A DNA stretch of 64,000 nt from IMGVR_UViG_3300042879_006196:62001-126000, one strand, 5' to 3'. Shown: positions 6,859 to 58,662, numbered from the stretch's first letter. Notes: generated by a model from the letters alone, not told the origin. Made by a program: numbers and translations.

Positions 6859-6891
6859 CGTAATCTAAGAGCACAAGGATTTCGAATATAA
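6859..6891 (+). pseudogene. Remnant C-terminus of a Trp-repeat paralog
   Basis: Reads RNLRAQGFRI*, matching the ends RNLQAQGFPIKIY* and HNLKAQGFPM*. Confidence 0.6.
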
Positions 6892-6909
6892 ATTTAGTAA
6901 TTTAAGATT

Positions 6910-8466
6910 GTGTGGTATAGATATTGCAGATTAATTATAGCTGGCAAAGAACATATAATTAAAAAGATCATTGGTTATTTTAGAGAACAAGGGATTGGAC
7001 AAGTTGACTTAGATAATCTCCAACACAATCTGAATACCTTAGATAAGAATAATTTATTACCAGCGAGAATAGAACCTAGAAAAGATGGTGTATTTTTTGG
7101 TGATAGATTGTATGAAGATTTTTTAGAATTTCAAGAAATAGTGGATGGATTATATGGAGAATATAAATTAAGACAAAAAACAAAAGAACAAAAGAAATTA
7201 AGAGAAGAAAAAATAGAATTTGTTCCAGGTAAAACATCTGTTTATCCATGTAATAGTGTAAATGATGCGATCAAATATGGGGTTGGTACAGATTGGTGTA
7301 TTTCTCAACCTGGTAATGGAAATTATGATTCATATAGATCCGACTATCAATCTACATTTTATTATGTACAAGATAACACTAGACAATCTGATGATCCTTT
7401 ATCTAGAGTAATGGTGGATATACAAGCAAATGGTGTTGTCAAACTCACTGATATAAATAATACCACTGGTACAATAGCTGAATTTGGTACAGATTGGAAA
7501 AAGTATTTCGAGTATTTGGAAAAAAGTGGTGTAGATATTTCTCAATTTGTTAATAAACCTTTGACACAAGAAGAGATAGAAGAAAATAAGTTGATTGGTA
7601 AAGAAATAAATGATTTGGAGAAATTTGAAAAATTACCATTAGAATATAAATTCAAATACATTGGTCGTGGTCATTTATTAACGACAAAACAATTGGAGTC
7701 TATTATTAATCTTCAATCTGTTCATAGCAATGATGTAAAAAATACATTGATAAAACATTATTTAAAAACAGGAAGATCTTTACCAGCAATTCAAAAATTC
7801 ATTTTATTTGAAAGCAATCAAGGATGGAGAACAACATACATAAGAAGTAGAAAAATAGTAATAGATCAAATTAGAAAAAATTTATTGGATGACGACGAAG
7901 TAGCTCGCGAATTTCTAGATGCTGATGAAAGGGCTCTTTATGAAAATCCATTGAAATCAACAAATATTGTTGTGAAAAATATTGAAGATTTTGATTTTTT
8001 ATTAACTAAAGGTGTAAGTTTAAATCAGTTTAATTGGTCTAGTGTTTCTCAGATTCGTAATTTATCTGAAGATTTTATAAGAGAATATAAAGATAAAGTG
8101 GATTGGCTTGATATTTCTACTTATCCAAGATTATCTGAAGATTTTATCAGAGAATTTCAAGATAAGGTGTACTGGTGGATAATTTCTCAATATCAAACAT
8201 TATCTGAAGATTTTATAAGAGAATTTCAAGATAAGGTAAAATGGGGAACAATTTCTTACACACAGGAATTATCTGAAGATTTTATAAGAGAATTTAAAGA
8301 TAAGGTGGATTGGGAGAAAATTTCCAGATATCAAAAATTATCTGAAGATTTTATAAGAGAATTTAAAGATAAGGTGGATTGGTATTATATACGGTGGAAC
8401 GAGAATATTTCCGATGAAACCAAACGCAATCTGCAAGCACAAGGATTTCCTATAAAAATTTACTAA
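6910..8466 (+). CDS. MWY-start protein with KYGxGTxWC domain and 5 C-terminal 23-aa Trp repeats (paralog 1)
   Basis: LSEDFIREFxDKVxWxxISxxQx units at a 69-nt period (8062, 8131, 8200, 8269, 8338). Confidence 0.9.
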   Translation: MWYRYCRLIIAGKEHIIKKIIGYFREQGIGQVDLDNLQHNLNTLDKNNLLPARIEPRKDGVFFGDRLYEDFLEFQEIVDGLYGEYKLRQKTKEQKKLREEKIEFVPGKTSVYPCNSVNDAIKYGVGTDWCISQPGNGNYDSYRSDYQSTFYYVQDNTRQSDDPLSRVMVDIQANGVVKLTDINNTTGTIAEFGTDWKKYFEYLEKSGVDISQFVNKPLTQEEIEENKLIGKEINDLEKFEKLPLEYKFKYIGRGHLLTTKQLESIINLQSVHSNDVKNTLIKHYLKTGRSLPAIQKFILFESNQGWRTTYIRSRKIVIDQIRKNLLDDDEVAREFLDADERALYENPLKSTNIVVKNIEDFDFLLTKGVSLNQFNWSSVSQIRNLSEDFIREYKDKVDWLDISTYPRLSEDFIREFQDKVYWWIISQYQTLSEDFIREFQDKVKWGTISYTQELSEDFIREFKDKVDWEKISRYQKLSEDFIREFKDKVDWYYIRWNENISDETKRNLQAQGFPIKIY

Positions 8467-8504
8467 TTTTTGAACAAATCATATTTTTTATCGTATAATA
8501 ATAA

Positions 8505-8579
8505 TGCGGGGTGGAGCAGAGGTAGCTTGTCTGGCTCATAACCAGAAGGTCGTGGGTTCAAATCCCTCCCCCGCACCCA
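8505..8579 (+). tRNA. tRNA-Met(CAU), initiator-like scaffold, CCA encoded
   Basis: TGCGGGGTGGAGCAG..GGTAGCT.GTCTGG-CTCATAA-CCAGA..GTGGGTTCAAATCCC..CCCCGCA-C-CCA. Confidence 0.9.
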
Positions 8580-9424: not shown

Positions 9425-9460
9425 GAAGGAAGATTTTTTCTCATTCTATAATACTATACT

Positions 9461-9883
9461 ATGAACAAACACAATCTATTAAACAAAATAGCTTCAATTG
9501 CTACAGAACTCGACGTAAAAGGTTTCACAAAGGAAGCAAAGACCTTGGATAATGTGTTAATTAGAGTGGCGGATATTAATCCTGAAGAATATTGGGATAA
9601 AGAATGGAGAAGAGAGTTTCGTGAAGAAGAAAGAACTATTGTTCCAACAAAAAAAGTTTGGGAGTATGTTAAAAGCGCACACACTAAAGAATTAGAATAC
9701 GCACTTGAAGGTGGCGGCTTAGACGTGAAAAATTTTGCTGAATTTTGCTGGTCTTTAAAAGATGAAAATTTAAACAACATGATCAAAAATAGCCCAGATC
9801 TTAATTGGGCATGGTTGGAAGAAGCATTTATAGATCATTTGGAATATATTCAACATTCTAAGTTTGACTCAGAACCAGAATGA
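9461..9883 (+). CDS. Hypothetical protein with shared N-terminal IASxATELD.KG..KEA tag
   Basis: ORF; tag shared with the genes at 9976 and 20778. Confidence 0.8.
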   Translation: MNKHNLLNKIASIATELDVKGFTKEAKTLDNVLIRVADINPEEYWDKEWRREFREEERTIVPTKKVWEYVKSAHTKELEYALEGGGLDVKNFAEFCWSLKDENLNNMIKNSPDLNWAWLEEAFIDHLEYIQHSKFDSEPE

Positions 9884-10551: not shown

Positions 10552-10590
10552 TTAAAAGGAAGAGCACCGCGCAAAATTTAAATATAGATT

Positions 10591-12891
10591 GTGTGGTATA
10601 GATATTGCAGATTAATTATAGCTGGAAAAGAACATATAATTAAAAATGTTATTAATTATTTTAGAGAACAAGGGGAGTCTGAAGTAAATCTAAATGAAAT
10701 CTCACAGAAACTAAATGTTTTAGATAAATCACAAAAATTGCCAATTATTGAAAGAAGAAAAAAAAGTATTTTTTTTAATAATCAAGAATTCACCAAATTT
10801 CTTGACTTTTCAGAAAAAGTGGATCGTTTATTTTCTGAACATTTACGAAATGAAAAAACAAAAGAACAAAAAAAAATACAGAAAGAAGAAAAAACAGAAT
10901 TCATTCCAGGCAAAATATCTGTTTATCCATGCAAAAATGTAAATGATACAATCAAATATGGCGCTGGTACAAGTTGGTGTGTTTCACAGCCTGGTAATAA
11001 CATGTATGATAGTTACAGAAATCAAAGTGCGTCCACATTTTATTACATTCAAGATGGAACAAGAGATTCTAGTGATCCATTATCAAGGGTAATGTTAGAT
11101 GTACAAGATGGCGATGAAATTACATTAACTGACACAGATAATGACACTGGCGCTATAGCTGAATTTGGCACAAATGTAGATGCTTATTTAGATTATTTAG
11201 AAAACAATGGCGTAAACACTGCTCAGTTTGTCAATAAACCTTTGACAAATGAGGAAAGAGAAGAATTTCGAATATTAGGTCAAAGAAATAATGATTTAGA
11301 ATGGTTTGAAAATTTAAGTTTAGATTATAAATTCAAATATATTGGAAGAGGTCATCGTTTAACAGATGAACAGCTTTCATCAATTATAAATTTAGAATCT
11401 GTTGACACAAAAAAGATTGCATTAGAATTAATTAATGATTATGTTAACACAGGCTTAAATTTACCTTTAAATCAACAAAAAATTCTATTTGAAATTAATC
11501 CACAAATTCAAAAAACCTATAAAAGAAGAAGAGCAATTGCAATTGAAGCAATTAAGAAATATTATTTTAATAATACATATGAATTAAAAAATTATGCTTT
11601 ACAAAATAAAGATCTTGAATTGATTGATTCAATTATTGAAGAAAAAGGTATTGAAGCATTCAAAAATGCGAGGGCAGCTCAGCCTGTAATTGAATATTTA
11701 TTATCAAAAGGCTTGGACCCTAGTTATGTGAAATGGCAAGACATGTATTTAGAAAAATTATCAGAAGACTTTATAATCAAATACATCAACTTTTTAGACA
11801 TTAAGCGTATATCTCACTATCAAAAACTATCTGAAGATTTTATAAGAAAATATTCAGATCTTGTTGATTGGCGAAATATTTCATATTTTCAAAAATTGTC
11901 AGAAAATTTTATTGAAGAATTTAAAGATCGCGTAGATTGGCAAGAAATTTCAAGCAGACAAATATTATCTGAAGATTTTATAAGAAAATTTCAAGATAAG
12001 ATAGAACAAAGCAGATCATGGTCTGAAATTACACAATATCAAAATTTATCTGAAGAATTTATGGATGAATTTCAAAATAAATTAGATTGGGAAAAACTTT
12101 CAGATTACCATGAAAATAGAAAATATGGACAGAAACTTTCAATTGAATTTCTTTTAAGGCATAAAGATAAAATTGATTGGGAAACATATTCACGTAAATA
12201 CGGTGCCAATATCGCTGAGGAATATTTGAGAGCTCTCAAATATTATATACACTGGGATAAAGTAAGTTATCATAATGTATCTGATGAATTTTTGTTTGAA
12301 TTTGAAAATTATATAAATTGGAAAAAAGCAGCGAGCACAAAAGAAAATATCCCTGAAATTTTACTCCGAAGACACGCTGATGATTTAAATTGGTATCATA
12401 TTTCAGCTTTCCAAACATTATCTGAAGATTTTATAAGAGATTTTGCTGATCGTTTTAATTGGGTTTTTATTTCTCAACATCAAAAATTATCTGAAGATTT
12501 TATAAGAGAATTTAAAGATAAGGTGGATTGGTATTATATTTCTGAATATCAAACATTATCTGAAGATTTTATAAGAGAATTTCAAGATAAGGTAAAATGG
12601 GGAACAATTTCTGTATATCAAAAATTATCTGAAGATTTTATAAGAGAATTTCAAGATAAGGTAGTTTGGCATTTTATTTGTAGATATCAAACATTATCTG
12701 AAGATTTTATAAGAGAGTTTCAAAATAAGGTATATTGGGCAGAAATTTCTCAAGATCAAAAATTATCTGAAGATTTTATAAGAGAATTTCAAGATCGTGT
12801 AAAATTGCATTATTTATTGCGAAATGAAAACCTTTCTGATGAAATCAAACACAATCTGCAAACAAAAGGTTATCAAATAAAACATTTTTAA
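10591..12891 (+). CDS. MWY-start Trp-repeat protein (paralog 2, about 15 repeats)
   Basis: Same N-terminus and KYGAGTSWC domain as paralog 1; long repeat array. Confidence 0.9.
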   Translation: MWYRYCRLIIAGKEHIIKNVINYFREQGESEVNLNEISQKLNVLDKSQKLPIIERRKKSIFFNNQEFTKFLDFSEKVDRLFSEHLRNEKTKEQKKIQKEEKTEFIPGKISVYPCKNVNDTIKYGAGTSWCVSQPGNNMYDSYRNQSASTFYYIQDGTRDSSDPLSRVMLDVQDGDEITLTDTDNDTGAIAEFGTNVDAYLDYLENNGVNTAQFVNKPLTNEEREEFRILGQRNNDLEWFENLSLDYKFKYIGRGHRLTDEQLSSIINLESVDTKKIALELINDYVNTGLNLPLNQQKILFEINPQIQKTYKRRRAIAIEAIKKYYFNNTYELKNYALQNKDLELIDSIIEEKGIEAFKNARAAQPVIEYLLSKGLDPSYVKWQDMYLEKLSEDFIIKYINFLDIKRISHYQKLSEDFIRKYSDLVDWRNISYFQKLSENFIEEFKDRVDWQEISSRQILSEDFIRKFQDKIEQSRSWSEITQYQNLSEEFMDEFQNKLDWEKLSDYHENRKYGQKLSIEFLLRHKDKIDWETYSRKYGANIAEEYLRALKYYIHWDKVSYHNVSDEFLFEFENYINWKKAASTKENIPEILLRRHADDLNWYHISAFQTLSEDFIRDFADRFNWVFISQHQKLSEDFIREFKDKVDWYYISEYQTLSEDFIREFQDKVKWGTISVYQKLSEDFIREFQDKVVWHFICRYQTLSEDFIREFQNKVYWAEISQDQKLSEDFIREFQDRVKLHYLLRNENLSDEIKHNLQTKGYQIKHF

Positions 12892-12900
12892 TTTAAGATT

Positions 12901-14598
12901 GTGTGGTATAGATATTGCAGATTAATTATAGCTGGCAAAGAACATATAATTAAAAATGTCATTAATTATTTTAGACAAAAAGGCGAAATTGAAGACAATC
13001 TAAATGAAATTTATCGCAAGCTTTTGGATCTTGACAAATCCAACAAAATACAAAATATTGGAATAATAGAAGATAAAGTTAATTTTAATGATAATTCATT
13101 CAATAATTTTATAGATTTTTCAGAAAAAATAGATGAATTACATACAAATTATTTTTGGTTGAAGCAACAAGAAAAATTAAAAAAGGAACAAAAAGAATTA
13201 CAAAAAAATGAAATAGAATTTGTTCCAGGTAAAATATCTGTTTATCCATGTAATGATGTAAGTGATACAATCAAATATGGAGCTGGTACAAGTTGGTGTA
13301 TTTCTAGACCTGGTAATCGCATGTATGATTCATATAGATCCAGCAATCAATCCACATTTTATTATGTGCAAGATGGAACTAGGCAATCTGATGATCCATT
13401 ATCAAGGGTAATGATAGATAGGCAGAAAAATGGTGTTGTCAAGCTCACTGATATTAATAACCGTACTGGCACAATAGCTGAGTTTGGTACAGATTGGCAA
13501 GCATATTTTGACTATTTGGAAAGCAAAGGCGTAAAAACTTCTCAATTTGTTAATAAACCTAGAACACAAGAAGAAATTGAAGAGACTAAAAAATTAGGCA
13601 CAAAAAAAGACAATTTAGTATGGTTTAAAAACTTAACAAACGATGAAAAATCAAAATATATTGGAAGAGGTCACCTATTAACTAATAAACAATTAGAATA
13701 TTTATTATCAAGAGATGATATAGGCAAATTATTAATTCCTCAATATTTAAATACTGGTGTTAGTTTGCCTCCAAAACAAAAAAAAATGTTATTTTCTAAC
13801 AAACAATATGAAAATACATATTATAAAAATATTGAAATTGCACATCAAGAAATTAAAAAATACTGCTTTTCAAAACACAGTGATAATATTGCTTGTGAGT
13901 TAGAAATTTTAATAAATGCATTAGAAACAAATCAATTTGAACTTGTAGAAGAATATCAAAATAGAATTAATTTGTTAGACATTGAAAACTTTGAACCCAT
14001 TCCTAATTTTTATGATGATGAAGATGATGAAGATGAAGATGATGATGAAGATGATGAAGAGGTTATTTTTATCGACGGGCGAGCTTATACTTTTAATTTG
14101 AGTGTTAATATTTCAGTGGAAATGGCTGAATTTTTATACGAAATAGGAGCTGCTGAAGACAATTTAAATGAGATCTGCCACATGCGAGGATTATCTGAAG
14201 ATTTTATAAGAGAATTTCAAGATAAGGTGAATTGGAGGGCAGTATCTGAATATCAAACATTATCTGTAGATTTTATAAGAGAATTTCAAAATAAGATAGA
14301 AGAAACAAGATCTTGGGATAGAATTTCTGGATATCAAAAATTATCTGAAGATTTTATAAGAGAATTTAAAGATAAGTTGAGTTGGGATAGAATTTCTGGA
14401 TATCAAAAATTATCTGAAGATTTTATAAGAGAATTTAAAGATAAGTTGAGTTGGGGGAAAATTTCTTATTTCCAAAAATTATCTGAAGATTTTATAAGAG
14501 AATTTCAGGATAAAGTGAATTGGGAGTATATACAGAGCAACGAAAATATATCTGATGAAACCAAACACAATCTGAAAGCGCAAGGATTTCCGATGTAA
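12901..14598 (+). CDS. MWY-start Trp-repeat protein (paralog 3, 5 repeats, acidic tract)
   Basis: Same architecture; DDEDDEDEDDDEDDEE tract. Confidence 0.9.
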   Translation: MWYRYCRLIIAGKEHIIKNVINYFRQKGEIEDNLNEIYRKLLDLDKSNKIQNIGIIEDKVNFNDNSFNNFIDFSEKIDELHTNYFWLKQQEKLKKEQKELQKNEIEFVPGKISVYPCNDVSDTIKYGAGTSWCISRPGNRMYDSYRSSNQSTFYYVQDGTRQSDDPLSRVMIDRQKNGVVKLTDINNRTGTIAEFGTDWQAYFDYLESKGVKTSQFVNKPRTQEEIEETKKLGTKKDNLVWFKNLTNDEKSKYIGRGHLLTNKQLEYLLSRDDIGKLLIPQYLNTGVSLPPKQKKMLFSNKQYENTYYKNIEIAHQEIKKYCFSKHSDNIACELEILINALETNQFELVEEYQNRINLLDIENFEPIPNFYDDEDDEDEDDDEDDEEVIFIDGRAYTFNLSVNISVEMAEFLYEIGAAEDNLNEICHMRGLSEDFIREFQDKVNWRAVSEYQTLSVDFIREFQNKIEETRSWDRISGYQKLSEDFIREFKDKLSWDRISGYQKLSEDFIREFKDKLSWGKISYFQKLSEDFIREFQDKVNWEYIQSNENISDETKHNLKAQGFPM

Positions 14599-15822: not shown

Positions 15823-18474
15823 TTAGATTGTGTTAAATTTTGTTAAGTTTTTTTTCATCCACTGAAGGGCTTCAGCTTTATCGTTAAACTCTCCATTCAG
15901 CTGTGCTTTCCAGGCTTCATCTAACATATCTTTGATATCTCTTCCTTTCAGATTAGTGTTTTCAACAACATCATAGCCATTAATAAACGCCACTTCTCTT
16001 TGCATTCTATTTTGCAACCATTCTAATGCTGTTTCTCTGTTTTTCATTCTTGGATCATGATCCAAAATCATTTTTCTATGTTCTTTCAAAATTTGCCCGA
16101 TTATTGGACCACCTTTTTTCGTGTAAACCATAATATCTCTACCTTGTAAAAGATCTTGTGCTTTATCTTCAAATACACCGAGCTCATTTGCTTTTTCAAT
16201 CATTGTTTTTGCTTCATCTGGTAGTTTTTTTTCTAAAGGTGGTCTACCTGAATGATCTGCCTCAATTAAATAAGAAAGCATTTTAAGATTTGAAGGATAA
16301 ATTTTTTCTGCTAAATTTTTCACAAAAGAATCTTGTTTGGAAGTGTTTGAGTGATGAATGTGTGCAAGATGGTATTCTACCAAAGGTACCACTTGATCTA
16401 TCACTTTCTTGGGAGCCCCTATTGATTCTAAAAACGCTCTAGCTTTAGGTCCGCCTTTTTCTTCATGACCATGAGATGTAATTCTATCTTTTCCTTTTTT
16501 ATTAGTTACAGCTGTCGTTTCAGGTTTTGCAAAATCATGTGCAAGAGCCGCATAAATTAACACTTCTCTTTGTTCAGGAGAAAGATTTTCTCTGTCAGCA
16601 ATTCTAGCTGCTTCATTCATAACATGTGCAGTATGAACGTCCACGCTGCCCTCAGGGTGCCACTCCGAATCTTGTGGGGTATCTTTCAGATCATGTATTT
16701 CAGGGAAATTAGCAGACCAACCAGTGGTATAAAGAAAATCTAATGCCTTTCCTGGTTCAATACCTTTTGTTACAAGTTTTTTAAATTCTTCATAAATTCT
16801 CTCTTTAGGGAGATGCTGGAATTCTTCTCTTATAGATTGTGCTAATTCAGCTGTTTCAGGTGCAATATCAAAACCAAATCTAGATGCAAATTGCATGCCT
16901 CTTAAAACTCTCAATGGATCTTCAGCAAAAGCATCAGATGTATGTCTTAATATTTTATTAGTAAGATCTTGTCTACCGTTATATGGATCCACTATTTCAT
17001 GCGTGATAGGATCATATGAAATAGCATTAATTGTAAAATCTCTTCTAGCAGCAGCCTCTTCAGGTGTAAGATCTGACCTCACCTCTACATTAAAATCTTT
17101 ATGCCCCACTCCTGCTTTAGAATCAAGTCTGGGTAATGAAAAATCAAAATCCATACCATCTTTGCCAACAAATTTAATCACTCCAAATGATTGTCCAACA
17201 AGATCTGCTTTACCATACTTAGACAAAATCTGATTCAATTCATCATAATTAAGCCCATACACTTCAAAATCAATATCCTTTGGTGATTTACCTAAAATGG
17301 CATCTCTTACAGCTCCTCCAACAACAAGTGCCCTACCTCCTGAATTTGAAATATCAGAAAGCAAATCATACACATAATCTGGAAGTGATATCAGTAAATT
17401 TTGTTTTTCACCGTATTTTTTCAAATTAAAAGATACATTTCTTACATAAGCCAATTTATGAATTTTCCTCTCAACATAATCTACGTATTCTTGTAAATAT
17501 ATAGCATTAGATCTTTTTGTTTCTGGATTAATTTTATTTTTTTCTGATTCCAATGCGGACAAAAGATTTCTATAGGCTTCCAATTCGCCTATAGAATATC
17601 TTTCTTTTTCAAAAATTTTATATGCATCTGAAATAATTTTTTTGACAGGTTCAGGCATTATAATTATTGGTTTAGTTCCTTTTTGATTGAAGATATAATC
17701 GTATAATCCTTTTTTAAGGAAAAGCAGATATTCTTTTCCAAAATAATCTCTATGAGTATAATTTGGCAAATATTGTCTATGTTTTAAAACTATATCATTA
17801 ATACAATATTCAATGACATCATGCACAGATTTTCTGACAGATTGATTGTGAAGCTTCGAATAATTTTCTACGAACTCTACATTTAGGATATTGTTGTGTT
17901 TCTGAATTAAGCCTTGTAAATTAGCCCTTGCTTCTTCAGGTGATTGATAATAATAGGGAAATTTCTGCTGATCTTCTCTAGAAAGTTGGCTTTGATGTTT
18001 TTTATCTGTTCTATCTAAAAGTTTTTCATTTCTCCACCAATCTGTTTTGCTTTTTTGTTTACTAATAACATGGGTAATTTCATGAGCCATGTTAGATTTA
18101 ATATAAATTAAATCTTTATTTTTGTCCGATGCAGCATTAATGCCAATTTCTTTGTCAATAGTGGCTTTTGCGTGTTGTTTTTTATTTTTATCAAAATAAA
18201 TAAATACGGGTATTTTTAAATCTAAGGCTTTTGACTCTAACACACAATCTAAAAATAAAGTTTGAATCTTTTGATAAATATCACCCCATAAAAGAAGTTT
18301 TTTTTCATAAGCAACAGTAGAAGTATCAGTGGCATTTTGTAATTCTTCTCTCATAATTGATTCTTTTTCAGAGATCTCTAAAAAAGCTGGATTTGTAATC
18401 ATGGCATATATATTATTTGCCACTGAATCAAAATTATCAAAGTATTGTGTTACTGAGCTATACTTATACCACAC
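15823..18474 (-). CDS. cca: CCA tRNA nucleotidyltransferase with HD domain, fused to an N-terminal HEXXH domain
   Basis: VGGAVRD..DIDFE, RRDFTINA, EDPLRVLR, HPEG..H and HDFAK motifs; N-terminal MWY and AHEITH. Confidence 0.9.
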   Translation of the reverse strand: MWYKYSSVTQYFDNFDSVANNIYAMITNPAFLEISEKESIMREELQNATDTSTVAYEKKLLLWGDIYQKIQTLFLDCVLESKALDLKIPVFIYFDKNKKQHAKATIDKEIGINAASDKNKDLIYIKSNMAHEITHVISKQKSKTDWWRNEKLLDRTDKKHQSQLSREDQQKFPYYYQSPEEARANLQGLIQKHNNILNVEFVENYSKLHNQSVRKSVHDVIEYCINDIVLKHRQYLPNYTHRDYFGKEYLLFLKKGLYDYIFNQKGTKPIIIMPEPVKKIISDAYKIFEKERYSIGELEAYRNLLSALESEKNKINPETKRSNAIYLQEYVDYVERKIHKLAYVRNVSFNLKKYGEKQNLLISLPDYVYDLLSDISNSGGRALVVGGAVRDAILGKSPKDIDFEVYGLNYDELNQILSKYGKADLVGQSFGVIKFVGKDGMDFDFSLPRLDSKAGVGHKDFNVEVRSDLTPEEAAARRDFTINAISYDPITHEIVDPYNGRQDLTNKILRHTSDAFAEDPLRVLRGMQFASRFGFDIAPETAELAQSIREEFQHLPKERIYEEFKKLVTKGIEPGKALDFLYTTGWSANFPEIHDLKDTPQDSEWHPEGSVDVHTAHVMNEAARIADRENLSPEQREVLIYAALAHDFAKPETTAVTNKKGKDRITSHGHEEKGGPKARAFLESIGAPKKVIDQVVPLVEYHLAHIHHSNTSKQDSFVKNLAEKIYPSNLKMLSYLIEADHSGRPPLEKKLPDEAKTMIEKANELGVFEDKAQDLLQGRDIMVYTKKGGPIIGQILKEHRKMILDHDPRMKNRETALEWLQNRMQREVAFINGYDVVENTNLKGRDIKDMLDEAWKAQLNGEFNDKAEALQWMKKNLTKFNTI

Positions 18475-18522
18475 AATCTAGTATTAAAAATTTTTAAGTT
18501 ATATACCTCGTATTTAAAATAT

Positions 18523-18839: not shown

Positions 18840-19442
18840 TTATCCAAAATCTTCTGTTTGTTTTTCAATAGATTTATTTACAGGTTCTTGAGGTGGTTGA
18901 TCAGGTTTCTGTGCAGGTTTTTGAGGTGGTTGTGGAATTAAATATCTGTTAAAATTTTCTTTCATATCTCTTAAAATTTGCATGGGGTTAGTTCCTGGCA
19001 TCCAAAATACTTGCGATTGAAATTCTTTTCCATCTATCCCTGTAAGTTTTACTATACCATTATTTATCTTTACTTTATACGAATATAAATACGTTTCTAA
19101 TTTATATTTGTTTGGGTCTTCAGTTTCATTTACACCTCTTTGTGGCAATGTTTTCTGATTTGTTTGTTGTGGGTTAAAATTATTGGTTGGTGCAGGATTT
19201 GTTCGTGGGGGCATTGCTGGTGGCGTCGAACGAGTTGCAGACAAGGCAGGTGTGGGAGAATTTGTTTGTGTAGTTGAAGGTTTTAGAGGTGGCTTCAGAT
19301 TAGCATACCCAAGACCCCCAGTGAGTTTTTTTAAATAAAAATCATTGTCTTTATTTTCTGCCACAATTCTTGGAATTACCACGCTTCCATCAGGCAATTT
19401 TACCGCTTGATTTATCACTGTTTGACAAAATCTGTACCACAC
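18840..19442 (-). CDS. MWY-start Pro/Gln-rich protein
   Basis: MWYRFC start; low-complexity linkers. Confidence 0.75.
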   Translation of the reverse strand: MWYRFCQTVINQAVKLPDGSVVIPRIVAENKDNDFYLKKLTGGLGYANLKPPLKPSTTQTNSPTPALSATRSTPPAMPPRTNPAPTNNFNPQQTNQKTLPQRGVNETEDPNKYKLETYLYSYKVKINNGIVKLTGIDGKEFQSQVFWMPGTNPMQILRDMKENFNRYLIPQPPQKPAQKPDQPPQEPVNKSIEKQTEDFG

Positions 19443-19520
19443 AATCTGATATTAAATAAATTTCACATTATTTCCTTCGAATGAATTCAGCAAATTCGTG
19501 TATGTTTTTTCGTATATAAA

Positions 19521-20780: not shown

Positions 20781-21368
20781 TTAATTCCTAATATTTTTTA
20801 CCACTTGGTTCCAGTCCATAATTTCTAAAATTGCATCAATGTACCCTTCGCGGTCTGTTCCAAAATCTGGGAAATAAGCATGTTCATACATGTCTATTGC
20901 TGCAATTAATTCACAATTCCACATAGGGAATGTGTTTTGTGTATCACCGATTACATTAATAATCATTTCGTGGTCGTAGCAATAACCAACAAATGCCCAG
21001 CCACGTGATGCTAATGCTGTGGCTTTTAAGTCATTAATGTAGTTTGAAAAATTATCATAATCAGCTTTAATTAAAGCATTGAATTCTGAGGTGGGTTTTC
21101 CATCTCCATTCAAATGATTAAAAAATATTTTGTGATTTAAAAAACCTCCATATGCAAAAGATTCAGCCATTTTTTGATCTCTCACTTCAGAAAAAATAGT
21201 GTTGATCTCTTTTAAATTTTTTCTTTTGTTTAAAGCTTCCACTGCTTTATTATTATTTTTGGCGTAGCTTTGCCAAAGTTTCAAATGTTCCTCATTTGTT
21301 TTTTTAGAAATCCCTACTTTTTGTAATTTGTTTTTAGGTAATTCTTTTGGAATGTCTAATTTTACCAC
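20781..21368 (-). CDS. sod: Fe/Mn superoxide dismutase family protein (start moved to GTG 21368)
   Basis: H..L..SY, NHKIFF, RGWA and DMYEHAY motifs; AGGT exactly 34 nt before the GTG. Confidence 0.85.
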   Translation of the reverse strand: MVKLDIPKELPKNKLQKVGISKKTNEEHLKLWQSYAKNNNKAVEALNKRKNLKEINTIFSEVRDQKMAESFAYGGFLNHKIFFNHLNGDGKPTSEFNALIKADYDNFSNYINDLKATALASRGWAFVGYCYDHEMIINVIGDTQNTFPMWNCELIAAIDMYEHAYFPDFGTDREGYIDAILEIMDWNQVVKNIRN

Positions 21369-21439
21369 ATTCTTTTTTTCTTGATGACAACTTATATTAC
21401 CTTGAAGGAATTTGAAGTGAGATTGTGTAATTAGATTGT

Positions 21440-22972
21440 ATGAGTGGTTGTGTTCCTTGCATGAAGGCAAATGAAAATATTTTCAGCTTGATTGATTATG
21501 CAAATAGCTTAGACATTAAAAATCCTAAACTCGCATCAAAAATTGATCAGATTGTGTTGGGGATGGTGAAGGAAAGTCAAGCTACAGACAACAGTTTAGC
21601 TTTTCAAGGACCAGGTACTAATGTGGAAAGAACTAAAGTAGAACAAACAGACAACAGTTTAGCTTTTCGAGGACCAGGTACTAATGTAAATAGAAAGCAA
21701 GATTCATCTGAAAAAAAAGGTGGTTTAGGGGAATCTTTGTCGAAAGTTGCACCTTCAGCAGCTTATATTGGTTTAACTGGAATGCAATTTGTTGCAAATA
21801 AATGGTGGGATGAGCTTTTTATGGAACGTAGATTTTATTATTTATATAGTCTTGCAAATCAACAAAAAGACCCGACAAAAAAGAAACAACTATTCAAAGA
21901 AGCAGCATTTGCCTTTCAAACAATAGAAAAAAACCACCCACAACTTTTTAACAAAATTGTAGAAAATTTAAATTTGAAAAACGTAGATAGCCTAAATGGA
22001 TTTTTTTTGTTACAGTTAAAAACTGTAAAAAAAGAACTCAATAACTTTCAAAAAACTTTAAAAGCAATGGGCGGATATGAAAATCTTATACCAAGTGTAG
22101 CAAAATTAATTGAAGAATTGCAAGACAAAATGCTTTCTAATAATGTTCCAAATGGACAAGTACAATTTTACGTGGAAAAATTAAAAAAAGCTTTAGCAGG
22201 AAAAAATTTCGAAGATGCCTATAAATTTATAAGTAATTGGAGACAGCCTAACACATTAATGAATACTATTGCTAAAAATCTGACACAAAGAAACCCCCAA
22301 GGAGTCATTATTGCTGATGGCGCGGAAGTTTTAAAAAAAACAACAAATGCTACTATGGTTGTATCAGAGAAAGAAGTAAGTAAGTTGGGGAAATTCCTTG
22401 AAGAAATTACATTAGCATTTCCATTTTTAAAAGATTATATTAAACCGATAAAAGTGTTTGGAGGTATTGTAATAAATCTGGGTTTGGGTTTAGCACAATT
22501 AGTTGACGTAATTAATATGATGCGCACTGGTCAAGCTAGAGGTGCTAAATTTTGGTGTCAGGTATTTGGAGCACTTTCATCTTTTATTCAATCAGCTTCT
22601 TTTATACCCGCTGTTATGGTAGCCACAGAAGGAATTTCTGCAGGAGTTGGTGCTTTTATGAAAGCTATAGATTTAATAATAAATGGTGCTTACTGTACTT
22701 CTGTTTTTTTCTTTTCAGCTAGTGATGCCAAAAATCTTCAAGGATCTATCACACAATCTCAACTATCTCCTAATGATTTGAATGTTGCTAATCAATTAGT
22801 AAACATTAAAAATAAAAAAATGATCAATGATCAATTTAAAGGAATGGTTGCTAATAATAAAATTGAGAATCCTAATGAAGTGGGGGCATATTTGAGAAAA
22901 CAATTATTAACTAAGCCGATTGCCCAACCTGGACAGCCAGTTGCTCAACCAGGACAACCTGCTGTAGCATAA
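21440..22972 (+). CDS. Large hypothetical protein with tag-like N-terminus and hydrophobic C-terminal helices
   Basis: YANSLD..NPKLASKID; duplicated TDNSLAF.GPGTNV; Gly/Ala-rich hydrophobic region. Confidence 0.75.
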   Translation: MSGCVPCMKANENIFSLIDYANSLDIKNPKLASKIDQIVLGMVKESQATDNSLAFQGPGTNVERTKVEQTDNSLAFRGPGTNVNRKQDSSEKKGGLGESLSKVAPSAAYIGLTGMQFVANKWWDELFMERRFYYLYSLANQQKDPTKKKQLFKEAAFAFQTIEKNHPQLFNKIVENLNLKNVDSLNGFFLLQLKTVKKELNNFQKTLKAMGGYENLIPSVAKLIEELQDKMLSNNVPNGQVQFYVEKLKKALAGKNFEDAYKFISNWRQPNTLMNTIAKNLTQRNPQGVIIADGAEVLKKTTNATMVVSEKEVSKLGKFLEEITLAFPFLKDYIKPIKVFGGIVINLGLGLAQLVDVINMMRTGQARGAKFWCQVFGALSSFIQSASFIPAVMVATEGISAGVGAFMKAIDLIINGAYCTSVFFFSASDAKNLQGSITQSQLSPNDLNVANQLVNIKNKKMINDQFKGMVANNKIENPNEVGAYLRKQLLTKPIAQPGQPVAQPGQPAVA

Positions 22973-23039: not shown

Positions 23040-23399
23040 TTATTTAAGAGTGAGAAGATATTTTAATTGATTAAGTGCGCCAAGCATTTCATCTCTGATG
23101 TTTAAAAGATCTGTATCTTTCTCATTAAGAGCTTGTGGAATTTTGTCTTCAAGCACTTCAATATAAGCATCAATGTTGTCTTTAAAATTATCTGCATAAT
23201 TGAACAAAGTTATGTTAAATTTATCACTTGCCACTGGTCTTTTATATTTGCCGATATGAATTTCCATAAATGAATCAATCAAATCATCTAATGTTTCATA
23301 AGCGTTGCCTAATGCCTTATGTTCTGCATAACTTTCTGTTTGCCAATGGTAAATTCTAAGTTGATTTTGCAACGTAAGAAATAATTCAACTATGCTCAT
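23040..23399 (-). CDS. Ferritin/Dps-like four-helix protein (DUF5856-like)
   Basis: YHWQT.SYAEHKAL...D.F.E and NIRDEML..LN.LKYLLTL motifs. Confidence 0.75.
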   Translation of the reverse strand: MSIVELFLTLQNQLRIYHWQTESYAEHKALGNAYETLDDLIDSFMEIHIGKYKRPVASDKFNITLFNYADNFKDNIDAYIEVLEDKIPQALNEKDTDLLNIRDEMLGALNQLKYLLTLK

Positions 23400-23460
23400 A
23401 CTTATTACTTAAAAAAAAATAGGGCAAAGCCCTATTTTTAATTCTTTTATGAAATAAATT

Positions 23461-24978: not shown

Positions 24979-25716
24979 TTAATATACGGGGGCTTTAATG
25001 TGATGTTCTTTAAATTTAAGCACGTTTTTGATAGAAGCAATTTTTTCCACTGAATAAATATAAGTGGATTCAAAATATTCACGATCTACAAAAAAACCTG
25101 TTGTGTGATATTTTTGATTTACACATTCAATAATTTTTATTTTTGCATTGAAAAAACATTTCAGTTTCGATAGATTGTATTCAGAGATTGGTTCACCAAA
25201 GTAAATATAAGGAGCTGTGGAAGTGAAGCATTTCAAAAGAATTTTTTCTCTGTCACCAGTAGCCACACATACATCATCAAGAGGTTGTTTTTTTAATTTT
25301 ACATTTATAAAGTCATCAATATTTGGTTCTAGTATTGGTAGTAGAATTTCTTGTCTGTAAAATGATTTGAAATTATCTTTCAAATTTTTAATAATAATTA
25401 TTGGCTCTTTATCGAGAATCAATACTGCTTCACCTAATGCTCTTAGTTCTTTATAAGTTACGATTGCACTGGTTTGATCTTGAGGCACAATTATCAACCA
25501 TTTCACACAATCTGACAATACTGTTTTCCAATAATTTTCAATGAATTGATTTGATTCTTTATAAATCATTACTAAATTTGGATTGTCGGATTCTTTAATA
25601 TTTTTATTCAAAAGTAAAAGATTATTTTTTGCATGTAGATCAAAATAATTGCCATAAAACCTATAAGATTCAATCTCGTTCTGTAGTAAAATAAAAAACA
25701 GACAATAATCTAGCAT
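24979..25716 (-). CDS. Hypothetical protein (start probably ATG 25716)
   Basis: ORF; AGGT 35 nt upstream of this ATG. Confidence 0.6.
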   Translation of the reverse strand: MLDYCLFFILLQNEIESYRFYGNYFDLHAKNNLLLLNKNIKESDNPNLVMIYKESNQFIENYWKTVLSDCVKWLIIVPQDQTSAIVTYKELRALGEAVLILDKEPIIIIKNLKDNFKSFYRQEILLPILEPNIDDFINVKLKKQPLDDVCVATGDREKILLKCFTSTAPYIYFGEPISEYNLSKLKCFFNAKIKIIECVNQKYHTTGFFVDREYFESTYIYSVEKIASIKNVLKFKEHHIKAPVY

Positions 25717-25809
25717 CAATATTTTATACAAGCCTAGTGATAATATTACCTTAATTAAAAATAAGGAAAAATCAATTTTTTTTCAGAAACAAAAACCAGG
25801 AGAATCGAA

Positions 25810-26078: not shown

Positions 26079-27065
26079 TTAATTTGTGGATTTCACCCAC
26101 ACTTCAAGAGCTTTTACTGTACCAAGTGCTGCGATTGATCCAGAAGTAATTCCCATTGAGGTAATACCAAGTGCTCTATAAGTGGAGTTGTTAAAAATGC
26201 CGATGTTTGCCCTTCCAGTGGCGTTTGTGGTGCTTAAATTCACTACTGTGGTTACACCTGTAGATAAATAAACAGTGATCCCTAAATTAGAAAATAAATT
26301 GGTGCATGAAAGTCCTGTTATTGAAGCAGTGCCAAATCTAAATTCGAAATATTCTGCATTTTTAATTGGTCTAAAAGCATATAATGTTGATGAAGTTGTA
26401 CTAATTGGACCAGAAAGAATTATAGTATTTGTATTCAAAACTCCGACCACTGTTGTAGAGAGGGATATAGCTGAAGAGCTAGGTAATCCGCTTACAGGTG
26501 AAGCTACAATAATGTCTCCATTCATGGCAAAATTAGTTATAGGTGAAAATCCAGAAACAGTAACATTATTGCCTGAAATTGTAGAAATGCTTGCAACATT
26601 TTGTTTATTAGTAATTGGCGAGGTAGCTGGATAATAAATTAAACTTGTTCCATTCCAGGATGCAAAACCAATTTGCTGAACTAGTTCTTGAGCATTTGCT
26701 TGATACCAAGATTCTTTGAATGAATTTTGCCAAGCCACGTTGCGAGAAATACTTAGAGCATTAAACCAGTCTCGAAGAGCAGATGAATATGTGTTATTGA
26801 AAAAATTATTCAGAGTTTGATTTACTGTTTTTGCAATGTTTAACGCACCTGTAGAGTATGTATTTTCATTGCTTAAATGCGCATTAACCACACTCACACC
26901 ATTAGCCACTTCAGTGGTGGACATACTTGCTAAGAATAGTTGTCTAGAGGCAATGTATGTGATAAGTGTAGATGTAGGGCTATACACTTCTTCAAAACCT
27001 TTGGCATAAGATGTGCCAATTATGGCTTGATAAGAACTAAAAAAACTTGTATCAGAAATAGCCAT
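26079..27065 (-). CDS. Ser/Thr-rich putative virion structural protein
   Basis: Composition rich in S/T/N/G and poor in charged residues. Confidence 0.5.
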   Translation of the reverse strand: MAISDTSFFSSYQAIIGTSYAKGFEEVYSPTSTLITYIASRQLFLASMSTTEVANGVSVVNAHLSNENTYSTGALNIAKTVNQTLNNFFNNTYSSALRDWFNALSISRNVAWQNSFKESWYQANAQELVQQIGFASWNGTSLIYYPATSPITNKQNVASISTISGNNVTVSGFSPITNFAMNGDIIVASPVSGLPSSSAISLSTTVVGVLNTNTIILSGPISTTSSTLYAFRPIKNAEYFEFRFGTASITGLSCTNLFSNLGITVYLSTGVTTVVNLSTTNATGRANIGIFNNSTYRALGITSMGITSGSIAALGTVKALEVWVKSTN

Positions 27066-56472: not shown

Positions 56473-56938
56473 GACTATCCACTACACAGAATCTAAAGAG
56501 CTGAAAGAATTAGCCAAAAAACTGCGTGGAGCGTATGTAAATGTTATTGGGTATGTTGATTTAGAAAAAATATTTTTTGCTTTTAAGGGTGGTGATGTAA
56601 ATGATGATTTTCAATACGAAGTGCTAGGGCTAAAAAATGAATGGGTAAAACACACCTCTAGTAAAGGCGACGAACCAAAAGTATACTGTATTGCTTTTGC
56701 ATTTGATGCCTATCAACAAGCTTTAGGTTCACAGCTTGAATGGATTTTGTTAGAAGCTTTATATTCTTGTCATCCACTTATGGATGGAAAATTAAGAAGA
56801 AAAGATGTTCATCAATACTCAAGATTTTTAAAAACTCTTGAAGATCTGGGAGAAAGTTTTACATGGAGAGCAAACAATCACTTGCCTTCTTTACTTGGTG
56901 ATGAAACCATTGTATTTGCATTAGAGGAAGATGAATGA
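56447..56938 (+). CDS. Hypothetical protein (degenerate phage metallopeptidase-like fold)
   Basis: Overall pattern similar to that family, but HEXXH is replaced by LEALY. Confidence 0.4.
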   Translation: MAQEKQMPKTIHYTESKELKELAKKLRGAYVNVIGYVDLEKIFFAFKGGDVNDDFQYEVLGLKNEWVKHTSSKGDEPKVYCIAFAFDAYQQALGSQLEWILLEALYSCHPLMDGKLRRKDVHQYSRFLKTLEDLGESFTWRANNHLPSLLGDETIVFALEEDE

Positions 56939-57912
56939 GCTTATATAATAAATATAGACCAAATACTTTTGAGAATTTAATACAATCTAAATTTAATAAA
57001 GGTTTTACAAAAGATTCTCTCACACATCATGCATACATGTTTTTTGGTTCTCCAGGAACAGGTAAGACTTCAACTTCCAGGCTGTGTATGGCTGAATTTT
57101 TAGATGATAAAGAAAAAAATTTGGCTATAAATGGTACTCATCCAGACTACATTGAGGTAAATTGTGCCGTCAATAATGGTGTAGATGATATCAGGAACAT
57201 AATCTCAGATATTATCAATACAATGCCTGTGCAAAGCAAATACAAATTTATCACATTTGATGAATGCCACATGCTTACTACACAATCTCAAAATGCATTG
57301 TTAAAAACTGTAGAAGAGCCGCCTAAGCATGTTAAGTTTTTTTTCTGCACTACAGAAGTTAATAAAGTTCTTCCTGCAATCAGATCAAGATGTCAACTTG
57401 TTCCATTTATTAAGTTGAATGAAAAATCTCTAATAAAAATTTTAGAAAATATATGTAAAGGAGAGAATTTCAGCTATAATCAAGAGTGCCTTAAGCTAAT
57501 TTCAAGTTGTGCTGATGGCTCTGCAAGATCTGCAATCAATTTGTTAGAGCAATGTTGCTCTGTTCTCAATGATGAAGATGCTGTGGCTCAGATCGTCGGC
57601 ACTTCAAGTGAAAGCAATTTTTTCAATCTTACAAAATTCATTTGTAACAAAAATAAAAATCAAAGTTTAATTCTATTGGAAGAAATTTTTAATAATTCAA
57701 TTGACCCAGGAAGTTTAATGAATAAGTATGCTGATTTTATAGCTGAACAAATTTTAAACAGAGTGAGTGATCCAGCAAAGTGTGAATTTGAAGGCAAAAA
57801 GCTTTTAATTATTGCAGATTGTGTGACAGAAATATTAAAAGATTTTAAAATTTTGCAAAATATAAAACTTATTTCTAAAATAAACGTATTAAAAGCAATA
57901 GAAAAAATGTAA
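56935..57912 (+). CDS. dnaX: DNA polymerase III gamma/tau clamp-loader subunit
   Basis: LYNKYRP, GSPGTGKT, DECHML, NALLK.VEEPP and SRC motifs. Confidence 0.9.
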   Translation: MSLYNKYRPNTFENLIQSKFNKGFTKDSLTHHAYMFFGSPGTGKTSTSRLCMAEFLDDKEKNLAINGTHPDYIEVNCAVNNGVDDIRNIISDIINTMPVQSKYKFITFDECHMLTTQSQNALLKTVEEPPKHVKFFFCTTEVNKVLPAIRSRCQLVPFIKLNEKSLIKILENICKGENFSYNQECLKLISSCADGSARSAINLLEQCCSVLNDEDAVAQIVGTSSESNFFNLTKFICNKNKNQSLILLEEIFNNSIDPGSLMNKYADFIAEQILNRVSDPAKCEFEGKKLLIIADCVTEILKDFKILQNIKLISKINVLKAIEKM

Positions 57913-57942
57913 TTCTGCAAATTTATTTGTAAAATTACATAG

Positions 57943-58662
57943 ATGGTTGAAACGGATCTAATTCTTCACGCTCTTGTAGTAAAAGCTAAAAATGGTGACC
58001 AAAGGTCTTTTGATCAAATATTAACAATCCTTGACCCCGATATTAAAAAATTAGCCCACAAATATTACATCGTCGGCAGTGATGAAAACGATGTAATCCA
58101 AGAGTGTAGAATTGGGGTTTGGAAAGCAGTGAAAGATTTTGATGATTCAATGGGCATGACTTTTAAAAACTTCAGTTTGAGTTTGTGTTGCAAGAGGCAT
58201 TTAATCACTGCAATGTCTCATGCAAACACACAAAAATTCAAACTTCAAAATGAAGCTGTATCATTAAGTGCCCCTGTTTCTTTAAATGAAGAAGATGGGA
58301 TTCAAACTTATGCAGATTATATTCCAGATCAAAATTCTGATTTGTTAGAAAATTATATAATTCAAGAAGAATTTGAAACTAATTTAGGGCTTATTTCAGA
58401 CAAACTTACTAAATTAGAAATGTCAATATTTACACAATATGCCTATAATTCTTCTTATAAAGACATTGCAAAAGCACTTGATGTCAAACCAAAAACTGTT
58501 GATAATGCTTTGATGCGAATTCGTAAAAAAAGCGCGGAATCTTACCAAATATATTTGACTTCATTTTCTCAAATTAATATTGGTATAGCTTCGTATATTA
58601 ACTTACATGAAGGCGAAATTATACAAGAATTTATTGGAATCAGCACTTTCACGATGCTTTGA
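57943..58662 (+). CDS. sigH: SigH-like RNA polymerase sigma factor
   Basis: D.IQE..IG.WKA..DF, C.KR.LITA..A..QK...N..VSL and SY..IA......K.VDNAL.RI.KK match SigH signatures. Confidence 0.85.
   Translation: MVETDLILHALVVKAKNGDQRSFDQILTILDPDIKKLAHKYYIVGSDENDVIQECRIGVWKAVKDFDDSMGMTFKNFSLSLCCKRHLITAMSHANTQKFKLQNEAVSLSAPVSLNEEDGIQTYADYIPDQNSDLLENYIIQEEFETNLGLISDKLTKLEMSIFTQYAYNSSYKDIAKALDVKPKTVDNALMRIRKKSAESYQIYLTSFSQINIGIASYINLHEGEIIQEFIGISTFTML

Follow-up and report, generated by a model that had tools for sequence, protein, structure and literature searches.

Why should many genes of a giant lake-water phage carry the same two-part element at one fixed distance from their start codons, and what might read it? 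The question arose from the sequence of the window, a 64,000-nt stretch (IMGVR_UViG_3300042879_006196:62001-126000) of a 347-kb jumbo phage genome, in which a sequence-only reading had noticed AGG(A/T/G) beginning 34 nt upstream of at least 11 starts. This observation held in full: all 11 starts, at 6910, 9461, 10591, 12901 and 21440 on the + strand and at 18474, 19442, 21368, 23399, 29759 and 32042 on the - strand, have AGG(A/T/G) at -34, TAA or GAA at -12 and T at -1. The interpretation offered with it, namely that a phage SigH drives a late, mostly leaderless programme, is only partly supported, as detailed below.

Chance does not explain the pattern. In its strict form it occurs 23 times in the genome, against 5.45 +/- 2.2 (maximum 11) in 20 second-order Markov simulations; 11 of the 23 lie between 6.9 and 32 kb of the window, and nearly all open long ORFs. 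An unbiased positional count over 401 first start codons from our own gene caller gives AGG at -34 in 30, against a background of 4.5 per position (Poisson p = 2e-15), with 11 at -35 and 12 at -33. Although these 30 sites were picked only by AGG at -34, 26 of them also have (T/G)AA at -12 (33 of 371 other starts) and 24 have T at -1 (159 of 371 others). Such genes tend to lack a Shine-Dalgarno (SD) sequence, AGG at -34 being found in 20 of 169 genes without an SD and in 4 of 233 genes with one; within the window, the first start of every site has no match of 4 nt or more to the SD core in the 20 nt upstream. The element is also tightly coupled to the start codon: of 59 genome-wide matches to AGG-N19-KAA-N8-T-R, 25 place the predicted transcription start exactly on a called start codon, 5 at +1 or +2, and only 3 at 3-60 nt upstream, while shifting the spacing by 4 nt drops the count from 26 to 5. 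The scale is thus larger than the sequence-only reading had estimated, with about 30 such genes genome-wide, forming one (class 4) of at least four promoter-like classes that are fused to start codons and together cover about 40% of genes.

On the + strand of the window, three of the putative promoters, at 6876..6912 (AGG at 6876, TAA at 6898), 10557..10593 and 12867..12903, are fused to the GTG starts of phrog_3532 paralogues with the N-terminus MWYRYC, namely 6910..8466 (518 aa), 10591..12891 (766 aa) and 12901..14598 (565 aa), and a fourth, at 9427..9463, is fused to the ATG of 9461..9883 (140 aa, unknown), whose orthologue in the relative G004 keeps AGG at -34. A near copy of the 6876 element lies at 8442..8476 (AGG at 8442, TAA at 8464) but has no start codon; its predicted start at 8476 lies 29 nt before tRNA-Met (8505) and tRNA-Glu (8581), which argues for a transcription signal rather than a translation signal. 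On the - strand, 18472..18508 is fused to the GTG of 15823..18474 (883 aa, MWYKYS), a tRNA nucleotidyltransferase with a 380-aa N-terminal extension whose orthologue in the relative G001 starts ATG-TGG-TAT with AGG at -34, and 19440..19476 is fused to the GTG of 18840..19442 (200 aa, unknown, MWYRFC). The element at 21366..21402 (-) is fused to the GTG of the Fe/Mn superoxide dismutase (SOD) gene 20781..21368 (195 aa), and 21406..21442 (+), which is divergent from it and abuts it through a CCTTcAAGG palindrome, is fused to the ATG of 21440..22972 (510 aa, unknown). Further along the - strand, 23397..23433 precedes the ATG of 23040..23399 (119 aa, DUF5856 / phrog_858), where the AGG lies within a terminator-like hairpin, while the G001 and G004 orthologues keep AGG at -34 without the hairpin; 29757..29793 precedes the ATG of 29472..29759 (95 aa, unknown); and 32040..32076 precedes the ATG of 31026..32042 (338 aa, unknown), whose orthologue is 37% identical and yet keeps AGG at -34 and GAA at -12.

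The sequence-only reading had also proposed that the rule corrects two gene starts, and this is supported: SOD would begin at 21368 instead of the TTG at 21470, and 31026..32042 at 32042 instead of the TTG at 32108, since the orthologues in G001 and G004 begin at the same codons with AGG at -34; the Pfam SOD N-terminal domain aligns from residue 20 to profile position 18. The three near matches were also found, all on the - strand: 25714..25751 has AGG at -35 before the ATG at 25716, combined with a TGTATAAA-type -10 element; 27063..27102 has AGG at -37 and TAA at -15 before the ATG at 27065, with the correct box spacing and a predicted start 3 nt before the ATG, the G001 orthologue being similar; and 33406..33441 has AGG at -33 and GAA at -12 before the ATG at 33408 (59 aa). 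In contrast, the two leadered cases proposed at 9976 and 25810, where the predicted start was said to fall at or just before an SD, are not supported: for 9976 the predicted -12 triplet is ATC, and for 25810 it is GAA but -1 is C and the predicted start falls inside the SD.

The same peak is found in relatives that carry a homologue of the SigH-like sigma factor encoded at 57943..58662 (+), hereafter S1. It occurs in 18 of 139 starts in G001 (GC 38%; 1.6 expected, p = 2e-13) and 14 of 82 in G004 (0.56 expected, p = 2e-15), the two relatives with S1 homologues of 75-77% identity, and in 25 of 520 in G010 (GC 44.5%, 479 kb, sigma 41% identical; 6.0 expected, p = 6e-9). However, a fourth relative, G009 (S1 48% identical), shows only a weak peak, partly shifted to -35. 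Phage G, which has no S1 homologue, shows no enrichment (3 against 4 in the control). G010, which has S1 and a second sigma factor, S2 (described below), but no ECF sigma, keeps this class (18 against 1) and loses CGTATA enrichment (17 against 17). Of 14 orthologue pairs between this phage and G001 with a comparable N-terminus, 12 keep AGG at -34 +/- 1 from the same start codon, while the spacer and even the protein (37-86% identity) diverge.

Taken together, the sites have the form R-N-AGG-(A/T) ... 18 nt ... (T/G)AA(A/T) ... 8 nt ... T | (A/G)TG. The AGG box sits where a -35 element sits (-34 to -32) and the (T/G)AA box where a -10 element begins, so that a hexamer would span -12 to -7, while a pyrimidine at -1 and a purine at +1 is the usual start-site pair. 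Other classes show the same geometry: CGTATA is followed by 7-8 nt and then the start in 28 of 37 sites, and TGTA(A/C/T)AAT by 6-7 nt and then the start in 28 of 32. The AGG box and the spacer also fit the published SigH consensus of AGGA and GAAT with a 17-18 nt spacer (PMC12456013). AGG was the selection criterion, but independently of it position -31 is A or T in 21 of 26 sites and R occurs at -36 in 22 of 26, and the spacer is 18 nt in the main class, with minor offsets at -33 and -35. In the -10 box, AA at -11/-10 is present in 26 of 30 sites, but -12 is T in 20 and G in 6 of 26, and -9 is A in 15 and T in 9 of 26, whereas SigH promoters have GAAT.

S1 (239 aa) has sigma-70 region 2 (PF04542, 32-34 bits) and region 4 (PF08281, 33-36 bits), both above their cut-offs. 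Its five best hits belong to one model group (PRK08295.1 / spore_sigH), three of them named SigH, and cover residues 9-197 against profile positions of about 7-207; the next family is the generic sigma70-ECF superfamily at 59 bits, and SigW and SigF/G score 30-35 bits. However, the best SigH models give 110-116 bits against curated cut-offs of 208-295 bits (116 against 212-295 for the SigH equivalogs), about half of what is required, and S1 should be called SigH-like, not SigH. Its own gene has a different promoter, TGTAAAAT-N7-ATG (class 3), at 57928..57942, and lies between a clamp-loader gene directly upstream (56935..57912, +), which marks the end of the SD-led replication module (33.8-57.9 kb), and a DnaN-like sliding-clamp gene directly downstream (58607..59701, +). 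This suggests, but does not show, that its regulon comes on after replication genes are expressed. In addition, no RNA polymerase beta, beta-prime or T7-type domain was found in the phage, so host core polymerase is probably redirected by phage sigma factors.

The most likely explanation, held with moderate confidence, is therefore that transcription begins on the first base of the ATG or GTG, giving mRNAs with no leader and no SD, and that the best candidate reader of this class is S1. The sequence analysis establishes a conserved, bipartite, promoter-like element, its fixed distance to start codons, the lack of an SD and the SigH-like character of S1; the transcription starts themselves, the dependence of transcription on S1 and any timing of expression are inferred, as the only 'RNA-Seq' runs found to hold the sequence look like DNA. 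The "late" timing put forward by the sequence-only reading is not shown: the set mixes a CCA-adding enzyme, SOD and a Dps-like protein with an endolysin, a protease and many unknowns, while terminase, portal and head protease are SD-led. Against the leaderless explanation, 12 of the 30 starts are GTG, a poor 5'-terminal start codon in E. coli-type leaderless translation.

A possible though less likely alternative is that the promoter and the leaderless design are as described, but that the reader is not S1. It could be S2 (60518..61072, +; 184 aa, clear region 4), a second sigma-70-family protein present about 2.7-3 kb downstream of S1 in G001, G004, G009 and G010, which tracks the motif as well as S1 does, so that the phyletic pattern, itself confounded by common descent, cannot separate them. 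It could also be a host sigma, such as the host's own SigH, or the host primary sigma together with a phage activator binding the AGG box, in the manner of T4 MotA/AsiA sigma appropriation. The -10 box is T-AA in about two thirds of sites and mostly T-A-A-x-x-T-like (TAAAAT, TAATAT), which is close to a primary-sigma -10, and the sub-threshold score of S1 also leaves room for this view. However, S2 shows no affinity to any family whose consensus resembles AGG...GAA, its best specific hits being FliA/WhiG and SigF/G region 4; G occurs at -12 in about a quarter to a third of sites, which is the SigH signature and is disfavoured by primary sigma; and the R-N-AGG-W form and the 18-nt spacer fit SigH.

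It is much less likely that the motif is an RNA-level or translation signal on longer, leadered mRNAs, for example a stand-by ribosome site at AGG plus a short upstream ORF ending at the TAA at -12, with re-initiation at the start codon. This TAA is in frame with the start codon, AGGA resembles an SD core, and these genes have no SD of their own. However, no start codon is conserved between AGG and the TAA (positions -27 to -21 show no preference), about a quarter to a third of sites have GAA, not a stop, at -12, a copy precedes tRNA genes, the other three classes at the same distance are plain -10-like elements, and the geometry equals the -35/-10/+1 of sigma-70-family promoters. Lastly, an artefact of composition (the genome is 66% A+T, and an iterated weight matrix drifted into A-rich coding sequence), of duplicated 5' gene ends (the first 25 codons of the three phrog_3532 paralogues are nearly identical) or of the choice of start codons is largely refuted, as the upstream 34 nt of these paralogues differ outside the boxes, the remaining sites precede unrelated genes, simulations and shifted-spacing and reversed-pattern controls all fail to reproduce the counts, the peak recurs at 44.5% GC, and two starts that were not the first in their ORF were confirmed by orthologues.

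Among the closest systems, SigH promoters of Bacillus, Clostridioides and other Bacillota share AGG at the -35 position, R two bases before it, A/T after it, the 18-nt gap and AA at -11/-10, the longer form reported for the B. subtilis regulon being RNAGGAWWW-N11/12-RNNGAAT. They differ in the first and fourth bases of the -10 box, here more often T than G and A than T, respectively, and cellular SigH transcripts are normally leadered with an SD; moreover, the sigma is here phage-encoded. In Bacillus phage SPO1, phage sigma factors also redirect host core polymerase to phage-specific classes (gp28 middle promoters, AGGAGA-N17-TTTNTTT; gp33/34 late promoters), one with an AGGA-type -35 box, but SPO1 mRNAs have leaders and SDs, the -10 elements differ, and S1 is SigH-like, not gp28-like. 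Leaderless mRNAs of Actinobacteria (Shell et al., 2015, as cited in PMC8244752) likewise lack an SD. In these, as in those of Deinococcus and archaea and in single phage genes such as lambda cI, a -10 element ends 6-7 nt before an ATG or GTG that is also the transcription start; here, the design is found in a jumbo phage whose other genes carry strong AGGAG-type SDs, and is combined with several promoter classes, presumably sigma-specific. The jumbo phages AR9 and phiKZ also have phage-specific promoter classes, but use their own multisubunit RNA polymerases, AR9 5'UTRs being 26-491 nt and phiKZ showing no leaderless transcript (PMC5312081, PMC8244752). Finally, T4 late transcription relies on the gp55 sigma, gp33, the gp45 sliding clamp and the gp44/62 clamp loader. 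The position of S1 between clamp-loader and sliding-clamp genes recalls it, and the order clamp loader - S1 ... S2 is conserved down to 41% sigma identity; T4 late promoters, however, have only a -10-like TATAAATA and no -35 box, whereas this class has a strongly conserved AGG box. A predicted complex of the clamp dimer with S1 residues 190-239 scored 0.02, and clamp coupling remains an analogy.

A broader reading, plausible but tentative, is that a clade of freshwater jumbo phages has rebuilt its whole expression programme around leaderless messages, with each of at least four promoter types welded to the start codon and read by a different sigma (SigH-like, ECF-like or primary-like). A sigma switch would then set transcription and translation competence at once, independently of SD-anti-SD pairing, and S1, kept next to the clamp-loader gene and, in the close relatives, the sliding-clamp gene, might couple its regulon to replication as T4 gp55 does. 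Phage sigma cascades and leaderless mRNAs are each well established, but a jumbo phage in which dozens of genes per sigma class start transcription on the start codon has not been described in the phages whose starts were mapped, AR9 and phiKZ. If confirmed, this design would provide a sequence rule, which already corrects two gene starts in this window, to fix start codons and operon boundaries in a large family of uncultured phages (at least 146 homologues of the sigma are in the protein database), a natural set of orthogonal sigma/promoter pairs that need no ribosome-binding site, and a test case for how SD-using ribosomes handle 5'-terminal AUG and GUG at scale.

The window (bases 62001-126000 of a 347,392-bp IMG/VR virus record) is found almost whole in many lake-water metagenomes, in which the phage is abundant, and is only distantly related to Bacillus phage G, with 4% of a 20-kb query matching at 75% identity. 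The phage carries 23 tRNA genes and a tmRNA (window 2128-2201, 8505-8579 and 8581-8654; genome 171-173 kb). Window 33.8-57.9 kb is a replication module led by Shine-Dalgarno (SD) sequences, encoding exonuclease, helicase, DNA polymerase, recombinase, RecJ, ribonucleotide reductase and clamp loader. No RNA polymerase beta, beta-prime or T7-type domain is detectable in the genome with canonical models, which could nonetheless miss very divergent phiKZ-type subunits. Outside the window, genome positions 14-32 kb hold long arrays of 12-nt periodic repeats (GTGTGGTATCAG and variants), interspersed with about 20 copies of a unit reading GTGTGGTATGATTAATACAGATTGTGTG; few convincing genes lie here, and the IMG/VR label 'provirus' may stem from this odd end.

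All 11 starts claimed in the sequence-only reading have AGG(A/T/G) at -34, TAA or GAA at -12 and T at -1. The strict pattern of that reading occurs 23 times in the genome, against 5.45 +/- 2.2 in second-order Markov simulations; 11 of these occurrences lie in window 6.9-32 kb, and almost all open long ORFs. To avoid circularity, genes were called with a simple codon-usage caller (402 genes), and AGG was counted at every offset before the first start codon. Among 169 genes with no SD at any candidate start, AGG peaks sharply at -34, with 20 sites, compared with 5 at -35 and 6 at -33, over a background of about 1.5; a second peak at -29 belongs to another promoter class. Among 233 SD genes, there are 4 sites at -34. 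Over all 401 first starts, the count at -34 is 30, against 4.5 expected (p = 2e-15). Although these 30 sites were selected only by AGG at -34, 26 have (T/G)AA at -12 (versus 33 of 371 other starts), 24 have T at -1 (versus 159 of 371), 22 of 26 have a purine at -36, and 12 use GTG, i.e., 40% of the class. The observation is thus confirmed, and the element is bipartite and real. Of note, iterating a weight matrix (-42 to -5) over the whole genome drifted into A-rich coding sequence (GAAGAA...GAAAAA) and was abandoned, so that all statistics rest on positional counts at gene starts and on fixed patterns with controls.

The element is tightly coupled to the start codon. AGG-N19-(T/G)AA-N8-T-R matches 59 times on both strands at any position; for 25 of these matches the predicted +1 is exactly a called start codon, for 5 it is 1-2 nt off, and for only 3 does it lie 3-60 nt upstream of a gene. 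Moving the start codon 4 nt further away drops the count from 26 to 5. In contrast, the two cases for which the sequence-only reading placed the predicted start at or just before an SD do not hold up: at 9976 the -12 triplet is ATC, while at 25810 the boxes fit, but -1 is C and the predicted start falls inside the SD. The gene at 9976-10551 is an adjacent paralogue of that at 9461-9883, and the two begin with the same 12 bases (ATGAACAAACAC); the first (9461-9883) has the predicted leaderless promoter of this class, whereas the second has a strong SD (AAAGGAG) and no promoter motif, making them a natural pair for comparing the two initiation modes. One clear copy of the element, at 8442..8476, has no start codon; it resembles the promoter at 6876, and its predicted start is 29 nt before tRNA-Met and tRNA-Glu, which fits a transcription signal and not a translation signal. 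Searches of sequencing runs for transcripts of the phage found only lake-water metagenomes, and the four runs labelled 'METAGENOMIC RNA-Seq' behave as DNA, with even low coverage and no pile-ups of ends, so that transcription starts at these sites are inferred from sequence alone.

The first bases of these genes also show regularities. Nine genes of this class, of unrelated function (window 6910, 10591, 12901, 18474 and 19442; genome 168257, 172150, 303189 and 309113), begin GTG-TGG-TA(T/C), giving an N-terminus Met-Trp-Tyr. Orthologues in G001, the closest relative in the viral collection, keep MWY, and further MWY starts occur in two more relatives, G004 and G009; some use ATG and some use either Tyr codon. 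This hints at selection on the peptide or on the first transcribed bases. In addition, AGATTGTGT (usually CAGATTGTGT) is the most over-represented 9-mer of the genome, with 336 copies against about 9 expected, on both strands and mostly inside genes (in the window, e.g., 6905, 10586, 12896, 18471, 19439 and 21420). It is also the top 9-mer in G001 (65 against 3) and G004 (39 against 1.2), but not in G009 or in the more distant G010. It overlaps the start of at least eight genes of the class (AGATT followed directly by GTGT...), its reverse complement lies inside the promoters of another class (class 1, below), and it is possibly the site of a DNA-binding protein.

The pattern recurs in other genomes. 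G001 (166 kb, GC 38.5%) shows AGG at -34 in 18 of 139 starts, against 1.6 expected. A search of the viral collection with the single sigma protein encoded at 57943..58662 (S1) found nothing, but an alignment of 26 of its homologues, of which a protein search returned at least 146 at E <= 1e-5, allowed the identification of eight further viral contigs. In G004 (sigma 77% identical), 14 of 82 starts have AGG at -34, against 0.56 expected. In G010 (sigma 41% identical; complete, 479 kb, GC 44.5%, with 63 tRNA genes and a tmRNA), the count is 25 of 520 against 6.0 expected (p = 6e-9), and 15 of these 25 have (T/G)AA at -12 and 19 of 25 have T at -1. G009 (sigma 48% identical, complete) shows only a weak peak, partly shifted, with 8 at -34 and 13 at -35. 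Reversed-pattern controls agree, with 11 against 1 in G004, 18 against 3 in G010, and 43 against 5 in total over the eight contigs. Phage G has no homologue of the sigma and no enrichment (3 against 4). Cellular genomes carrying the nearest S1-like sigmas (an Armatimonadota MAG at 41% identity, plus Clostridia and Actinomycetota) likewise show no enrichment of the start-fused pattern, with 12/16, 11/7, 5/6 and 6/6 against controls; the design looks phage-specific, and these MAGs gave no clue to the host.

At the level of single genes, 12 of 14 orthologue pairs between the present phage (G000) and G001 with a comparable N-terminus keep AGG at -34 +/- 1 from the same start codon, while the spacer is rewritten and protein identity falls as low as 37%. 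These pairs confirm the shortened starts, proposed in the sequence-only reading, of the SOD gene (21368) and of 31026..32042. They also show that the AGG at 23399, which lies in a terminator-like hairpin here, is kept without the hairpin in the relatives. The SOD gene and the 510-aa gene are divergent (window 21366-21442), with start codons only 72 bp apart and their two AGG boxes abutting in a CCTTcAAGG palindrome; in G001, the two start codons are 48 bp apart, so that each -35 box lies next to the other promoter's -10 box.

Listing of the genes without an SD showed that this class (class 4, 34 genes by a looser rule) is one of at least four, all abutting start codons. Class 1 is an almost invariant box of about 35 nt (TTTTCCAG-R-TTTAACA...ATTATAATAGAT) directly before the ATG of 56 genes, mostly small + strand genes (a few are 700 aa or longer), at genome 3-68 kb, which includes window 0.3-5.9 kb (322-366, 1742-1786, 3910-3954, 4599-4643 and others). 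Its core, CCAGRTTTAAC, occurs 75 times, and its TATAAT ends only 4 nt before the ATG, which is too close for a normal sigma-70 start on the A. The motif is absent from G001 and G004 (both incomplete) and from G010, with one chance-level match in G009. Class 2 is CGTATA followed by 7-8 nt and the start, in 28 of 37 sites (in the window, 19524, 24976, 28361, 30460, 42684, 56017 and 58607), and about a third of these have AAC 16-18 nt upstream, as in ECF sigma-W-type promoters. Class 3 is TGTA(A/C/T)AAT followed by 6-7 nt and the start, in 28 of 32 sites; genome-wide, 26 of 34 such patterns sit on called starts. Together, the four classes cover 160 of 402 genes. By contrast, the mapped jumbo phages AR9 and phiKZ have long leaders and no leaderless mRNAs (PMC5312081, PMC8244752).

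The genome encodes three clear sigma-70-family proteins and one weak candidate. S1 has regions 2 and 4 and scores 110-116 bits against SigH equivalog models, below their cut-offs of 208-295 bits, while every other family scores 59 bits or less. S2 (60518..61072) is a generic sigma with a clear region 4, and S3 (genome 320400..320987) is ECF-type, with SigW-like models among its best hits. A recent multi-omics paper gives the SigH motif as -35 AGGA and -10 GAAT with 17-18 nt spacers, as in B. subtilis and C. difficile (PMC12456013); class 4, AGG(A/T)-N18-(T/G)AA(A/T), is a close variant of this motif. S1's own gene has a class-3 promoter in both G000 and G001, so another holoenzyme must make it first.

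The phyletic evidence that S1 reads class 4 is compatible but weak, as S1 and S2 always travel together, 2.7-3 kb apart. At window 56935-61072 the order is clamp loader, S1, DnaN-like sliding clamp, an unknown 282-aa protein and S2, and this order is conserved in G001 and G004; clamp loader - S1 ... S2 is also kept in the two distant phages, G009 and G010, where the two middle genes were not detectable. S3, in turn, is absent from the complete G009 and G010, and there the CGTATA class is not enriched (5 against 6, and 17 against 17), while class 4 persists in G010 (18 against 1). This ties class 4 to the S1/S2 cassette rather than to the ECF sigma, and family resemblance then favours S1. The co-occurrence of S3 with the CGTATA class also suggests a second sigma/leaderless-promoter pair. 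Finally, a reading of the element as an upstream ORF followed by re-initiation was rejected, because no start codon is conserved between the boxes.

Within the window, class-4 genes encode three phrog_3532 paralogues, a CCA-adding enzyme with a long N-terminal extension, Fe/Mn SOD, a DUF5856/starvation-regulator-like protein, and several proteins of unknown function. Elsewhere, the class includes a protease (phrog_3677), an endolysin-like protein, an endonuclease, a transposase and very large proteins of unknown function. Terminase, portal and head-maturation protease are SD-led, although class-4 sites are interspersed in that module. Late expression, as proposed in the sequence-only reading, is therefore possible, given the endolysin, the protease and the position of the sigma after the replication genes, but it is not shown. 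S1 additionally has a C-terminal extension of roughly 40 aa, ending in a conserved (F/L)-I-G-(I/F)-(S/G)-T motif in its closer homologues; a predicted complex of this tail with the sliding-clamp dimer returned no verdict, and is not evidence either way.

Taken together, the analysis establishes a conserved bipartite element at a fixed distance from SD-less start codons, its recurrence in relatives that encode the sigma, and the presence of a SigH-like sigma in a conserved cassette. That transcription starts on the A or G of the start codon, that 70S-type leaderless initiation follows, and that S1 is the reader are, on present evidence, inferences. The interpretation of these sites as a SigH-type, leaderless regulon driven by a phage sigma is partly supported: it is right in kind, but unproven on the sigma and on timing, and wrong on the two leadered cases. 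It also understates what is a genome-wide architecture in this phage, in which class 4 is one of at least four promoter classes abutting start codons.
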